Below, piece after piece: positions 1,162 through 61,811 of a DNA stretch of 64,000 nt (positions are counted from its first letter, which is position 1; every line of letters begins with the position of its first letter). A program made the translations under genes and the position numbers. Under the pieces are notes generated by a model. The model made no database searches. It was not told where the DNA came from and saw only the letters and a program-made list of their open reading frames with translations. Location of the stretch: sequence record KT895374.1. One strand, 5' to 3'.

Positions 1162-1195
1162 AACGATTAATAGACTAGTTAGTCTATTAATCGTT
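1162..1195. terminator. 16-bp inverted repeat terminator
   Basis: AACGATTAATAGACTA-gt-TAGTCTATTAATCGTT. Confidence 0.75.
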
Positions 1196-1324
1196 ATTTA
1201 GGTAATTTTTATCTATGATGGGAAATTCATGACTGCATTGCGGGCAAGAAGGTTCATTAAATATCATTCCTTTAATCCATTCGTAACTACACTGGACACA
1301 AATACATAATGACTCTTTCTTCAT
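1187..1324 (-). CDS. small Zn-ribbon protein (45 aa), not in the ORF track
   Basis: Manual translation MKKESLCICVQCSYEWIKGMIFNEPSCPQCSHEFPIIDKNYLNND; two CxxC pairs; GGGGG RBS. Confidence 0.75.
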   Translation of the reverse strand: MKKESLCICVQCSYEWIKGMIFNEPSCPQCSHEFPIIDKNYLNND

Positions 1325-3927: not shown

Positions 3928-4182
3928 TTAAATGATTTCCCGAATAAAGAAACCAATTTTATGATTACAATCAAATTTTTCGTAGATTTCAAATTGTTCA
4001 CCAATAATATTTTGAGCTGTTAATTTAGCACCCAGAAATGACAACCAACGATCTTCTGCCGCTTCATGAGTGTCAACACCTTCATTATTATAAACCCACC
4101 CTATTTTATCGTCTTCCAAAAAGAAAATACCTGAATTATATTCGTTTTTTAAAGTTTTATAAACATCTTGTAGACTCATCAT
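3928..4182 (-). CDS. hypothetical protein (84 aa)
   Basis: ORF directly downstream of 4192..5442. Confidence 0.65.
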   Translation of the reverse strand: MMSLQDVYKTLKNEYNSGIFFLEDDKIGWVYNNEGVDTHEAAEDRWLSFLGAKLTAQNIIGEQFEIYEKFDCNHKIGFFIREII

Positions 4183-4191
4183 AATCTTCCT

Positions 4192-5442
4192 TTACTTTTT
4201 AATATCCTCTATAGTTTTGATGAGATCTCTTCTATCGTCCATTATATACTTTCTGATAAGGTTTAATCTTTTTAGATTCCCATAAATAATAATTGTATAC
4301 ATGACATTTTTTAGAGGATCTTTAGTTTTTAAGGTGGTGTTTTTCCAATCGACTTCAAAGAAACCTTCATCAAGCTCTTTGTTATCCAATAGGACTTTTA
4401 CATTAAATAATTCCTTGAGGTTTAATTTTGCTTTTATAGCTTCTTCAAGCACTTCCCTAATTTCAGGATCTAATAATCTCTCAAATTGAAGATAATCAAT
4501 TTCTGTATTTATATCAGGTTCATATCCTTTATATTTCAGGAGGTGCATATTATCAATTTGTTCTCTAATAAAATGTGTAGGTACTTGAAATTCATATTTC
4601 ATTTTTCCATCATCCTCTAGATCTAATGGGATGTCTGGTACATCATCTTTAATTTCCATCACAAAATTTGAATGACTCCAAAAATCAAAAGAAAAGTTAA
4701 ATTCAACTGTTGAATCTTTTATAACTAATCCCTCTGTATTAACTTCTACGGTAGGAATATCTGGAAAATGTGTTAGAATATTAGTTTTATAATTATAATA
4801 ATATTTACTAGTTCCTGAAGCAGTATCAATACTTTCGGATATACCATTATAAGAATTATCAAATAGGTATTCTTCTAACTTGTTACGATCTACTTGATTT
4901 TTAAGATTAAGATTTAATCTCTGTGCAATATAAGTAGTATAAAGTTTAGGAATTCTAGTCTGAAGTCTAACATCATTAAGATAGAATCGACCACCAACCT
5001 CAAAGTTTTGCCTAATATAATGCAAGACATTAAGGGCTGATAATTTTGTTTGTAATACAATCTTTACATTAAAATCCATTTTAATTCGATCTGGTATAGA
5101 ATAAATATAAATATTATTCTTCTCATCATATAAGACTCCATTATATTGCTTGTGTGGTTTTTTAAATGTAAAATATTGAGTAGTATGCCATTTTGGTAAG
5201 AGTTCCATAAAACTATCTTCAGCAGTGTATTGTGTATCAATAACTAATAATGGTTTACTAAGTTTAATTATCTTATCATCTTCTAATCTTACTTCATTTA
5301 ATGAGTCAATAATGTACGTATCTTTAAAAAAATTAGGTGGAAATACTTCTTGTAAGAAACTCCTAGCATAGCCAGTAGCATTTCCAATTAGAGATGAAAT
5401 AGACGATGATGCTTTACAAGAAATAATTTGGGTTTCCTTCAA
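4192..5442 (-). CDS. hypothetical protein, possibly a virion structural protein (416 aa)
   Basis: Long ORF preceded by a late-type AACA-N6-TA motif; structural role is inference only. Confidence 0.55.
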   Translation of the reverse strand: MKETQIISCKASSSISSLIGNATGYARSFLQEVFPPNFFKDTYIIDSLNEVRLEDDKIIKLSKPLLVIDTQYTAEDSFMELLPKWHTTQYFTFKKPHKQYNGVLYDEKNNIYIYSIPDRIKMDFNVKIVLQTKLSALNVLHYIRQNFEVGGRFYLNDVRLQTRIPKLYTTYIAQRLNLNLKNQVDRNKLEEYLFDNSYNGISESIDTASGTSKYYYNYKTNILTHFPDIPTVEVNTEGLVIKDSTVEFNFSFDFWSHSNFVMEIKDDVPDIPLDLEDDGKMKYEFQVPTHFIREQIDNMHLLKYKGYEPDINTEIDYLQFERLLDPEIREVLEEAIKAKLNLKELFNVKVLLDNKELDEGFFEVDWKNTTLKTKDPLKNVMYTIIIYGNLKRLNLIRKYIMDDRRDLIKTIEDIKK

Positions 5443-26875: not shown

Positions 26876-27820
26876 CTATCTTAATAATTTACTAAATTCA
26901 GTATAAACATCAGCAATATATTTCCCAGCTACACTTTCAATAATATAATCTTTTGAAATTCCACCGTTTACTACTGAACCGAAAATAACAGAATAGAATG
27001 ATGCTAAATTATCAACCGCTAATAATGAACTCTCCCCATACATTCTAACCCAGTCATTGATAAACACTCTAACCGTTAAATCTCTCATACCTTTTAAATC
27101 TTTTATATTTTCAAAGAATTTAAAAATATCATCATAAGCATTATCATCCAGTTTACTTTCTTCTTCTTTGATTAGTTTTAGTGGGGATTTATTAAAACAT
27201 GCATAGTATGCAATATTATCAACTGTTTCACTATCTATTTTACCACACATATTGATTAAGAAAAATTTAGCCAGTAGGAACGATACTAGATCAGCTCTAA
27301 ATGGTTCAATACTTGTTGCAAATAGTTTGTCTAAGATTTTACCATTCATTTTTGCATAAACTATAGCACTATTTCTAATGATATTGATATTATTAGTGAA
27401 TCTATTCCAATTATTAGCAAGTTCTAATTGAATCATTCCATTTTGCATAAGATTAAATAATAATTTTGGATAAATATCAAATACTTCAGTACCTTTTGGC
27501 TTTTTTGCAAAGTCATTCAGGTTAATCACTGAAACCATTTGACCTTTATATTGCATTCCAAAAGTTGACAAATATTTAGGTATTTCAATGGTTGGATTCC
27601 AGATAGGTATGATTTTACCATTATTAAAATGCTGAAGAGTTTTACCTTTTCCACCAAAATTAATTCTTCTAGATATAATATTTAAAGCTTCATCTAGTTC
27701 ATTTGATTTTACAGCATCCCGATCAATGTTAACTGCATTAATATTTTTAACTACTTTTGGATTTGATATAGCTTGTTTAAAAATAGCACTGTCTCTTATT
27801 GTTTTCAAAATACTAGCCAC
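26876..27820 (-). CDS. hypothetical protein heading the late structural operon (314 aa)
   Basis: GTG start; AACA-N6-TA motif at 27838..27849. Confidence 0.65.
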   Translation of the reverse strand: MASILKTIRDSAIFKQAISNPKVVKNINAVNIDRDAVKSNELDEALNIISRRINFGGKGKTLQHFNNGKIIPIWNPTIEIPKYLSTFGMQYKGQMVSVINLNDFAKKPKGTEVFDIYPKLLFNLMQNGMIQLELANNWNRFTNNINIIRNSAIVYAKMNGKILDKLFATSIEPFRADLVSFLLAKFFLINMCGKIDSETVDNIAYYACFNKSPLKLIKEEESKLDDNAYDDIFKFFENIKDLKGMRDLTVRVFINDWVRMYGESSLLAVDNLASFYSVIFGSVVNGGISKDYIIESVAGKYIADVYTEFSKLLR

Positions 27821-27837
27821 CTTTTTATTTACTATTA

Positions 27838-27849
27838 TATTTAGTTGTT
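27838..27849 (-). promoter_or_regulatory. late-type promoter AACA-N6-TA heading the structural operon
   Basis: Minus strand AACA-ACTAAA-TA just upstream of the RBS. Confidence 0.55.
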
Positions 27850-27890
27850 TTGAAAGAGGGTTAATATATAAAATGAAAAAAAAAAAAAAA

Positions 27891-27918
27891 ATAGGATTTA
27901 GTAATTACTAAATCCTAT
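27891..27918. terminator. 28-bp perfect palindrome, probable terminator
   Basis: ATAGGATTTAGTAATTACTAAATCCTAT next to an A-tract. Confidence 0.65.
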
Positions 27919-27962
27919 CGAAGATATTATTATTAATAGTTATATTTAAAGATATTATTTAT

Positions 27963-28148
27963 TTAATCTTCAATTAAGACAGATGCAAGTACAACATCTT
28001 GAAGAATAAAATTCTGACCGTCATCACCTTCAACCGCACATAGACCATCATGAATATCTCTAATTGTACCATTAATAATAAATCTTCTAAAACCTCTTGT
28101 AACTTCAAATTTAACTTTCTGATCAACTTCTAATTTCATTTGTCTCAT
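27963..28148 (-). CDS. small beta-barrel (SH3/KOW-like) protein (61 aa)
   Basis: Alternating beta pattern KVKFEV...INGTIRDI...CAVEGDDG; GGGAGAGG RBS; fold is inference. Confidence 0.6.
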   Translation of the reverse strand: MRQMKLEVDQKVKFEVTRGFRRFIINGTIRDIHDGLCAVEGDDGQNFILQDVVLASVLIED

Positions 28149-28233
28149 AACATAGCCCTCTCCCTATTGGTATATAATAAATTTAACGTGGTTTTTGTTT
28201 TCTTTTTCTAATAAGCATTTTCTTATTTCTAGT

Positions 28234-28448
28234 GCATCTGCTAATTCTTAGTAGTAGGTTTAATTTCCTGATCTCTCTAGTAATCAACACAGCTTTTGTC
28301 TCCTTTACCAACAATATTAATAAAAATTTAACTGTAAGACAGTTAAAGGTGATTATAATTTACTTAGCATCTTGTTTACCGCTAAACAAGACGTTCCATA
28401 CCGTTACCGTTTTTTCTCTATCATTCTATACGATAACGCTAGCAACGC
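28234..28448 (-). ncRNA. candidate structured non-coding RNA (~215 nt)
   Basis: Promoter-like TATATTAA-N6-G puts +1 at 28448; the 5' end GCGUUGCUAG pairs with the 3' end UUAGCA(G)AUGC; internal 11-bp and 9-bp hairpins; no credible minus-strand ORF. Confidence 0.45.
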
Positions 28449-28518
28449 CTATTTTTAATATAATCTACCATTTAAAGATTATTGAAAGGACTATTATAGG
28501 TATTTATAGCGCATCTAA

Positions 28519-29229
28519 TTATTTTACTTTTAATAAAGATTGAGTCATAAATTTACCTAAGTCTTCATCTTTTATTCCGCTATTACTATTAATATATCTT
28601 GAGATACGCTCAATAGCATTTGAGAAAGGAATTTTCTTCATATTATAAGTAAATCCTTTTTCAAAATTATATGAATGAGAAAAGTTATGAAGGTCTCTAG
28701 TGTCTAAACTAATTAGATAGAAATCACCATCGATTAATCTAATAGAAAATTTAGGTACTGAGTCGCTTTCATTAATCATCTCACGAGTAAATACAATTTC
28801 TTTACCATCTTTTAAAATCTGAATATAATCAAAGAATGTTTTACTTCTTTCAATATTATTCCAGAAACTTTCTTTTTCTGCTCTAATAATTCTTTCTTTC
28901 GTTAAGTTTGCATGATCTTTTCTTTCTTTCAAGATAACATTCTTTCCCATAATCTCTAAAAACTTAGGGTCATTAAGAGAACTTCTTCCGAAGTCCTCCA
29001 GACCTAAAGCCGCACCAAATGTCTTAACTGGAATAGACATTGGTTTTTGCAGATTATTAGGAAAGATAGAAATAATATCTTGATCAATACTATCAGTTTC
29101 TCTTTGATAAACATAATAAGCTTCACTATAGTTTAGCTCACTAACAAATCTGAAGAAAGCGATATTTTTCTCTCTGTATGCTTCATCAATTTTAGTTTCA
29201 TCAAATTCGAATCTCTCAGTTTTAATCAT
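28519..29229 (-). CDS. hypothetical protein (236 aa)
   Basis: Long ORF with AAGGGT RBS. Confidence 0.7.
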   Translation of the reverse strand: MIKTERFEFDETKIDEAYREKNIAFFRFVSELNYSEAYYVYQRETDSIDQDIISIFPNNLQKPMSIPVKTFGAALGLEDFGRSSLNDPKFLEIMGKNVILKERKDHANLTKERIIRAEKESFWNNIERSKTFFDYIQILKDGKEIVFTREMINESDSVPKFSIRLIDGDFYLISLDTRDLHNFSHSYNFEKGFTYNMKKIPFSNAIERISRYINSNSGIKDEDLGKFMTQSLLKVK

Positions 29230-29827: not shown

Positions 29828-29938
29828 TTATTTAACAAATTTTCTAAGTAATTCACGAGTTACAACGCCAGCAGTAGTTCCAATTGCAGTTTTGATAAAT
29901 ACTTCTTTAGTTAAATTGAAAAATCTTTTTTTGCTCAT
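29828..29938 (-). CDS. cationic amphipathic peptide 4 (36 aa), not in the ORF track
   Basis: MSKKRFFNLTKEVFIKTAIGTTAGVVTRELLRKFVK; GGGGGAG RBS. Confidence 0.75.
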   Translation of the reverse strand: MSKKRFFNLTKEVFIKTAIGTTAGVVTRELLRKFVK

Positions 29939-29962
29939 TTCAATCTCCCCCTTAAATTTTAT

Positions 29963-30085
29963 TTAATTATCTAGATCTACAAACTTTTTAAGTAATTTAT
30001 CAGTAACTACTGAAGCCGTTCCTTGTACAGCAGTATAAATGGTTATAATTTTTAATGCATTTTTAAAGGCTTTTCTCTTACTCAT
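29963..30085 (-). CDS. cationic amphipathic peptide 3 (40 aa), not in the ORF track
   Basis: MSKRKAFKNALKIITIYTAVQGTASVVTDKLLKKFVDLDN; AGGAG RBS. Confidence 0.75.
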   Translation of the reverse strand: MSKRKAFKNALKIITIYTAVQGTASVVTDKLLKKFVDLDN

Positions 30086-30097
30086 TCCTATCAACTC

Positions 30098-30208
30098 CTA
30101 TTTAATTTCTTTAACAGCAGCGTCTGTTAGTTTGCTAGCCGCATATTGAATTGATAATGAAACTGCTAAAACTTTAATAATTTTGATTGCTGTTTTTCTC
30201 TTACTCAT
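30098..30208 (-). CDS. cationic amphipathic peptide 2 (36 aa), not in the ORF track
   Basis: MSKRKTAIKIIKVLAVSLSIQYAASKLTDAAVKEIK; GGGGG RBS. Confidence 0.75.
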   Translation of the reverse strand: MSKRKTAIKIIKVLAVSLSIQYAASKLTDAAVKEIK

Positions 30209-30237
30209 TTTTAATCCCCCCAATAAAATATTTTAAA

Positions 30238-30339
30238 TTATTTATTTTTAAAGCATCTTTCTAGATATTTTCCAACTAATATTTGACAAGATATTGCGGC
30301 TGTCATAGACAAGGTAAACTTAATAAGATCTTTTTTCAT
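30238..30339 (-). CDS. cationic amphipathic peptide 1 (33 aa), not in the ORF track
   Basis: MKKDLIKFTLSMTAAISCQILVGKYLERCFKNK; GGAGGG RBS inside the end of the upstream gene. Confidence 0.7.
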   Translation of the reverse strand: MKKDLIKFTLSMTAAISCQILVGKYLERCFKNK

Positions 30340-30685: not shown

Positions 30686-30774
30686 ATTTTTTCCTCTTTT
30701 CTACTTTTTATTTTTGTGAATGGATCATAGAAATTTCCTTAATTCTATAATGTTTTTATTCTTCTTTCACTATT

Positions 30775-30851
30775 ATAATATATATTTATTCGAATTTTTT
30801 GATACGGTTAGCAAATTTTAACTTATTTTTTAAAGCTATATTATTAAAATG
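30775..30851. promoter_or_regulatory. divergent pair of phage early-type promoters at the strand switch
   Basis: TATATTAT-N6-G on the minus strand at 30775..30782 and on the plus strand at 30837..30844. Confidence 0.7.
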
Positions 30852-33730: not shown

Positions 33731-33738
33731 TATATTAT
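33731..33738 (+). promoter_or_regulatory. early-type promoter upstream of the SbcD-like gene
   Basis: TATATTAT-N6-G with G at 33745. Confidence 0.65.
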
Positions 33739-33778
33739 AAATATGTAGTTTATAATTAATGAGGAGAGTGTGTAATAG

Positions 33779-61748: not shown

Positions 61749-61756
61749 TATATTAT
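61749..61756 (+). promoter_or_regulatory. early-type promoter upstream of the MoxR ATPase
   Basis: AAAGCTATATTATTAAAATG is identical to the 30832..30851 context; a second site lies at 61678..61685. Confidence 0.7.
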
Positions 61757-61811
61757 TAAAATGAAAGTAATAAAAAAACAAGTACACAAAAAAAAGGGAG
61801 AGTTTTAAATT

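Follow-up and report, generated by a model that had tools for sequence, protein, structure and literature searches.

We propose that the 370-nt gap between gp030 and gp029 of Bacillus phage vB_BpuM-BpSp is an intercistronic, non-coding spacer together with a small open reading frame (ORF35) missed by the annotation, that it lies within an early operon running from gp036 to gp029, and that it carries hairpins acting in cis and an internal late promoter. We give this reading a probability of about one in two. The hairpins, the sequence motifs, ORF35 and the synteny with phage AR9 are all observed directly in the DNA. The first-pass annotation had placed here a discrete, closed RNA of 215 nt (28234-28448, minus strand). 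Our analysis does not support that molecule: its last third overlaps ORF35, its 5' end is a chance-level motif, and its closing helix vanishes when it is folded in context.

Composition and folding of the gap

The window that we analysed is a stretch of 64,000 nt that matches bases 1-64000 of vB_BpuM-BpSp (KT895374.1) exactly. This 255.6-kb jumbo phage has Bacillus pumilus as its host and belongs to the genus Takahashivirus, alongside AR9 and PBS1; it is a poorly annotated uracil-DNA jumbo phage and a relative of AR9 and PBS1. The gap (28149-28518, minus strand) carries no annotation and is flanked by gp030 (28519-29229, minus strand), an orthologue of AR9 g287 with 27% identity over 99% of its length, and by gp029 (27963-28148, minus strand), which bears out the earlier description of a spacer of about 370 nt between minus-strand genes. 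Equally well founded was the remark that this spacer is richer in G and C than others. Its G+C content is 0.30 overall, the highest of 17 spacers, and reaches 0.41 in the best 80 nt; in the first 50 kb, the 16 other spacers that are 60 nt or longer range from 0.10 to 0.28, and the mean for coding sequences (CDSs) is 0.248. Within those 50 kb the gap is the sole truly non-coding G+C-rich island, the one other equally G+C-rich intergenic stretch being a gene absent from the annotation. In an A+T-rich genome, an island that is non-coding, structured and rich in G+C is a classic signature of an RNA gene.

The missed gene just mentioned (1187-1324, minus strand) lies inside the 275-nt gap between gp003 and gp002 and encodes a 45-aa, zinc-ribbon-like product with two CxxC pairs. 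A ribosome-binding site and a late-promoter motif are found just 5' of it, and a 15-bp terminator hairpin directly 3'.

Three hairpins are predicted in the minus-strand RNA of the gap. HP1 (28390-28449) has an imperfect stem of 18 bp that closes a loop of 19 nt (dG -19.5); it is longer than the hairpins given in the first-pass annotation and was absent from its list. HP2 (28368-28393) has 11 bp, including one G-U pair, and a 4-nt loop (dG -11.1), and competes with the 3' end of HP1 for a few bases. HP3 (28318-28347) consists of an A-U-rich hairpin of 9 bp (28347-28327, dG -6.3) with a U-rich run after it. HP2 and the 9-bp hairpin of HP3 had both been noticed earlier, and we found each where it had been seen (28393-28368 and 28347-28327), predicted with high probability. 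The other pairings put forward at the same time fared poorly: the closing helix has a pair probability of about 0.5 in the isolated 215 nt and of 0.00 when the gap or a longer transcript is folded, and the competing CCUUUA/UAAAGG pairing has a probability of about 0.02 or less.

We compared the folding of the gap with that of shuffled sequences. On the minus strand, the 215 nt from 28234 to 28448 gave a z score of -2.11 (10 of 200 shuffles were as good), the 133 nt from 28318 to 28450 gave -2.61 (1 of 200), and the whole 370-nt gap gave -3.07 (1 of 100). The plus strand of 28318-28450 gave -2.70, with 2 of 200 shuffles as good. Measured against shuffles of its own, the plus strand does no worse than the minus strand, so that the signal looks like one of palindromic DNA, without strand specificity. 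We also ran a fold scan across both strands of the 64 kb in windows of 120 nt, corrected for composition. The best windows in the gap (28321-28470, minus strand) ranked 105-116 of 4260, in the top 2.5%; most of the top ranks went to long terminator-like hairpins between genes, and a few to long inverted repeats within genes. Structure is limited to 28320-28450 (z about -2.3 to -2.6), and from 28111 to 28320 it is below average, the part that holds ORF35 being unstructured. Together, these results point to a structured segment of about 130 nt and moderate stability, rather than to a closed molecule of 215 nt.

Promoter motifs, ORF35 and candidate transcript ends

The start site proposed for the 215-nt RNA is an early-promoter-like TATATTAA-N6-G (28448-28462, minus strand). 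We found that the sequence is indeed present at 28462-28448, but that it does not stand out from chance as a promoter. The consensus for early promoters of AR9, which are used by the virion RNA polymerase, is AAATATATATTAT-N6-G (PMC5312081), and according to the AR9 authors one departure from it can be enough to abolish a predicted early promoter (PMC5312081). In our window, exact TATATTAT-N6-G occurs 16 times against an expectation of 4.1, an excess indicating that the motif is real in vB_BpuM-BpSp; versions with one mismatch occur 85 times against 95.9 expected, and are thus at chance level. The whole genome holds 48 exact sites, about 78% of which have AAA at positions -5 to -3. From 38 such sites we built a whole-genome promoter matrix, on which the training sites score 10.9-24.8 bits. 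The site at 28462 scores 0.4 bits, which places it at rank 378 of 510,908 positions, and about 0.27 equally good sites are expected per gap. It shares with the AR9 early promoters TATATTA and a G six bases downstream, giving 7 of the 8 core bases plus the G, but differs from them in having neither the upstream AAA (-5 to -3) nor the final T. A promoter scan called no host-type sigma-70 promoter at the proposed start.

Elsewhere, the early motif carried over from AR9 is exemplified by sites at 30768-30782 (minus strand), 33731-33745 (plus strand) and 61749-61763 (plus strand). A TATATTAA variant that does have the AAA is found at genome position 169338, upstream of gp218, in a promoter-like position.

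The late promoters of AR9, recognized by the non-virion RNA polymerase, have the consensus AACA-N6-TA/G (PMC5312081). An exact AACA-N6-TA is located in the gap at 28365-28376 (minus strand); transcription from it would start at A28365, and the start codon of ORF35 lies 75 nt further downstream. This motif is 4.6-fold denser in spacers (2.0/kb) than in CDSs (0.44/kb), and most of its copies in spacers precede a gene start by 20-80 nt; by chance alone, 0.16 copies are expected per gap. In sequence and in placement, the copy at 28376-28365 resembles the late promoters of AR9, being an exact match, in a spacer, and upstream of an ORF with a ribosome-binding site. It differs from them in that it is a prediction from a motif of low information content, whose AACA sits in the 3' arm of HP2.

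ORF35, which carries no annotation, occupies 28183-28306 (minus strand) together with its ribosome-binding site: AAAGGAG (28306-28300) stands 9 nt before a GTG, which opens a frame of 35 codons (28290-28183) that would encode a very basic peptide. We scanned 50 kb for ribosome-binding sites with a start codon behind them that opens an ORF of 30 codons or more. There are 42 such combinations, and 35 of them are annotated gene starts. The remaining seven consist of two alternative in-frame starts, two clearly spurious ones, the 45-aa zinc-ribbon gene, and two adjacent starts of ORF35 (GTG at 28290 and TTG at 28287). About 0.01 ORFs with a ribosome-binding site are expected by chance per gap. ORF35 thus has the ribosome-binding site, the start codon and the open frame of a small gene. 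Its codon usage (log-odds -0.20) falls in the spurious range, genes scoring +0.31 +/- 0.14, and it matches no PHROG or Pfam family. The lack of homologues says little here, because the flanking real genes have none either. On its sequence features, we consider ORF35 likely to be a missed small gene. Upstream of it, from 28315 to 28518, all three minus-strand frames contain several stops and show no coding-like codon usage.

We then considered where an RNA from this region could end. At 28234, the 3' end proposed for the 215-nt RNA, there is no terminator, and the position falls inside ORF35; with a chance-level motif at the other end, the 215-nt molecule has defined ends on neither side. HP3 is followed by a U-run of 8 in 12 and contains only 2 G-C pairs; it is weaker than all 12 other terminator-like hairpins (-10.7 to -24.5), and a terminator scan did not call it. 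HP3 may be at most a weak terminator, or else the 5'-proximal hairpin of a late transcript. A strong intrinsic terminator, with a 13-bp stem and about 15 T, is present at 27876-27919 (minus strand), where it would end the operon after gp029.

A probable early operon in synteny with AR9

The gene order in AR9 is g287, g286, g285, g284, g283, g282, g281, g280. The homologues of gp030, which corresponds to g287, are confined to AR9 and its near-identical kin. The orthologue of gp029 is g283, which likewise has 61 aa and to which the match is weak (29.5% over 44 aa), and g281 and g280 equal gp028 and gp027 in length and position. In AR9, g292 has an early start site, and no further start is mapped before the late start of g281 (PMC5312081), which indicates that the block is one early operon. 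In vB_BpuM-BpSp, an exact consensus early promoter lies upstream of gp036 (30768-30782, minus strand), and there is no hairpin of at least 9 bp between this promoter and the gap. By analogy with AR9, we infer that gp036 to gp029 form one early operon whose transcript reads through the gap.

Two further observations concern this block. Four of its genes, gp032-gp035 (29828-30339, minus strand), are tandem paralogues of 33-40 aa with 23-53% identity; a basic N-terminus and a hydrophobic core are common to all four, and together they resemble an array of small membrane peptides. In AR9, the spacer between g284 and g283 (L002:4646-4736) contains a strong GGAGG ribosome-binding site and an 11-codon mini-ORF just upstream of g283, in parallel with the position of ORF35 upstream of gp029; the two peptides are unlike.

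These features suggest how the region may be expressed. The virion RNA polymerase would start at the early promoter upstream of gp036 (+1 at about 30768), and the early transcript would read through gp036-gp030, the gap and gp029 and stop at the terminator at 27919-27876. HP1, HP2 and HP3 would fold locally in the gap RNA and most likely serve in cis to hinder decay or processing of the RNA; HP3 may be a weak attenuator as well. The late motif (+1 at A28365) probably yields a second, shorter transcript that comprises ORF35 and gp029 and has HP3 near its 5' end.

Gram-positive mRNAs can carry stabilising hairpins, intercistronic or 5'-proximal, as well as stabilisers of the SD type; examples are the aprE leader, the 5' stabiliser of phage SP82 and the STAB-SD of cryIIIA. 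The gap would be akin to these in its stem-loops and its strong ribosome-binding sequence, placed before a short distal cistron with a strong terminator; it has no sequence similarity to them. A spacer with cis-acting hairpins is also close to the fallback of the first-pass annotation, a cis-regulatory leader, which our results support in part. Four observations count against the spacer reading: the composition and structure are also a signature of RNA genes, the codon usage of ORF35 is poor, the late motif may be a chance occurrence, and HP3 is weak.

AR9 has, exactly at the position of the gap, three genes of 131-146 aa (g284-g286). The gap could thus be a functionless remnant of the lost counterparts of these genes, its hairpins and motifs being due to chance and ORF35 a leftover open stretch; we regard this as somewhat unlikely. 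Consistent with decay, the G+C content is coding-like rather than spacer-like, and the frame that holds ORF35 contains 5 stops in 123 codons, compared with 14 in each of the other two frames. In addition, AR9 g284 aligns weakly to the ORF35 frame, with a score of 43 that 4 of 300 shuffles also reached. However, this match loses significance after nine tests, the 43-aa piece has no PHROG or Pfam match, and the rest of the gap (28315-28518) offers no frame with coding-like codon usage. Moreover, a strong and well-placed ribosome-binding site and an exact late motif are unexpected in decayed DNA, and the fold is more stable than that of shuffles. We prefer to see the gap as a spacer with cis-acting hairpins and a small gene.

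The earlier statement that an RNA from this locus could not be assigned to tRNA, tmRNA, SRP RNA or RNase P agrees with our searches for known families. The covariance models of Rfam 15 gave no match at gathering thresholds in the whole window, and chance-level matches only (14-17.5 bits) at E up to 10 in 27800-28700; ARAGORN found no tRNA or tmRNA gene. The Rfam search has power here, as it finds group I introns elsewhere in the genome: five that exceed the gathering score, at 66-83 bits, and a partial sixth, all in other large gaps. Like group I introns (RF00028), the gap is large, unannotated and relatively G+C-rich in an A+T-rich phage genome, and we considered whether it might be a degenerate one. 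We rejected this candidate: RF00028 gives no match even when E is allowed to reach 10, and gp030 and gp029 are each complete, as separate genes.

The introns themselves lie at L009:27518-28991 (genome 191518-192991, minus strand) and at L008:2789-3039 and 4154-4425, and none is annotated in the record. Three or four of them crowd one 1.47-kb gap beside pieces of an RNA polymerase beta-subunit gene, an arrangement implying that one gene is divided among very short exons. Three more unannotated gaps of about 390-460 nt (genome 79168-79572, 136710-137173 and 162221-162609) have no Rfam match at gathering thresholds.

Searches for relatives of the gap were negative as well. Against 50,697 phage genomes, blastn with an E cutoff of 10 returned only chance, A-rich matches. 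Exact-pattern scans of viral, metagenome and genome collections returned three matches, none of which extends past the pattern and all of which are in unrelated contigs of 34-57% G+C. Paralogues were found neither in the rest of the phage genome nor at the syntenic locus of AR9. The lack of conserved homologues in phage, viral, metagenome and genome collections counts against an RNA gene. The two flanking proteins are equally isolated, gp030 and gp029 finding only themselves among 5.8 billion proteins and nothing in viral contigs.

gp029 and the possibility of a discrete RNA

gp029 has gene-like codon usage (+0.46) and encodes a protein of 61 aa. A phmmer search with this protein finds long tandem-repeat proteins, with E down to 1.6e-20, whose repeats Pfam calls Tudor_5; gp029 itself has no direct Pfam match. 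Its structural model (pLDDT 80) is a five-stranded small barrel. The best PDB matches to this model are weak, with E of at least 0.01 throughout, and include the Tudor domain of PHF1 (TM 0.6) and Hfq (TM 0.65). With Tudor_5-type repeats by sequence and a small barrel by modelling, the earlier label of SH3/KOW-like was a fair one. It is reasonable, given the model, to describe gp029 as a Tudor/SH3-like small beta-barrel, for which RNA binding would be only a candidate role.

The AR9 orthologue of gp029 shows an unexplained RNA signal. In RNA-seq of AR9, g283 (L002:4737-4922) reaches FPKM values of 116,547, 1,018,650 and 283,868 at 5, 20 and 40 min, respectively (PMC5312081). Its neighbours have values of 0 to about 1,400, so that g283 is hundreds to thousands of times higher (PMC5312081). 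This signal is by far the largest of AR9; the paper maps no start for it and does not comment on it (PMC5312081). A g283 amplicon served for qPCR in the same AR9 study (PMC5312081), which makes carry-over a plausible trivial cause. The signal could thus reflect either a very stable processed RNA or carry-over of the qPCR amplicon.

In vB_BpuM-BpSp, HP1-HP3 and the U-run (28449-28320) might form a small RNA of about 130 nt that would be made from a weak promoter of its own or cut from the operon transcript, in the manner of an sRNA derived from the 3' UTR of gp030, and would act in trans, perhaps with gp029. We consider such an RNA improbable. It would fit a gap that has no equal in 50 kb as a truly non-coding, G+C-rich island and that folds better than its shuffles, both as a whole and in the segment concerned. 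Its layout of stem-loops followed by a hairpin with a U-tail would be akin to that of bacterial small RNAs, the TATATTAA variant at 169338 is plausibly placed as a promoter, and gp029 models as a Tudor/Sm-like barrel. Set against these points, the promoter in the gap is at chance level, the plus strand folds as well as the minus strand, and the fold windows rank just 105-116 of 4260. In addition, HP3 is a weak terminator, no homologues or paralogues were found, and no Rfam family matches although group I introns were found in the same genome. The comparison with small RNAs of jumbo phages and with bacterial sRNAs derived from 3' UTRs is similarly divided: the gap shares with these a G+C-enriched, structured, non-coding segment downstream of a gene, with a terminal hairpin and a U-run, but it differs in having no conservation, no Rfam family and no supported promoter.

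More specifically, the 130-nt cluster (28449-28320) might be an orphan sRNA released from the early operon transcript and acting with gp029 or on its expression. The AR9 g283 signal keeps this version alive, and we give it a slightly lower standing still, as quite improbable.

Finally, it is very hard to credit that a plus-strand gene of 103 codons (28232-28543) fills the gap: this frame is the longest open one there, and blastp in a small database pairs it, at E 1.6e-4, with an open frame on the strand opposite gp218. It has no ribosome-binding site, however, and a codon usage (-0.33) typical of spurious frames, which attain a length of 103 codons at other places in the window; it matches no PHROG or Pfam family, and the match to the gp218 locus has no DNA-level counterpart (17.8 versus a null of 16.5 +/- 2.1). 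Because the frame is antisense in both partners, this match is most likely an effect of composition, and we rejected both the gene and the link to the gp218 locus.

The early and late promoter motifs of AR9 carry over to vB_BpuM-BpSp. If the gap is a spacer with cis-acting hairpins, as we favour, its value would lie mainly in annotation: an early operon of this phage would gain a small ORF, stabilising hairpins and, probably, an internal late promoter. It would represent a new regulatory RNA of phage only if a discrete RNA were shown. With a small-barrel protein encoded next to it, and with the RNA-seq signal at the orthologue of that protein in AR9, the question of a discrete RNA is a worthwhile one.
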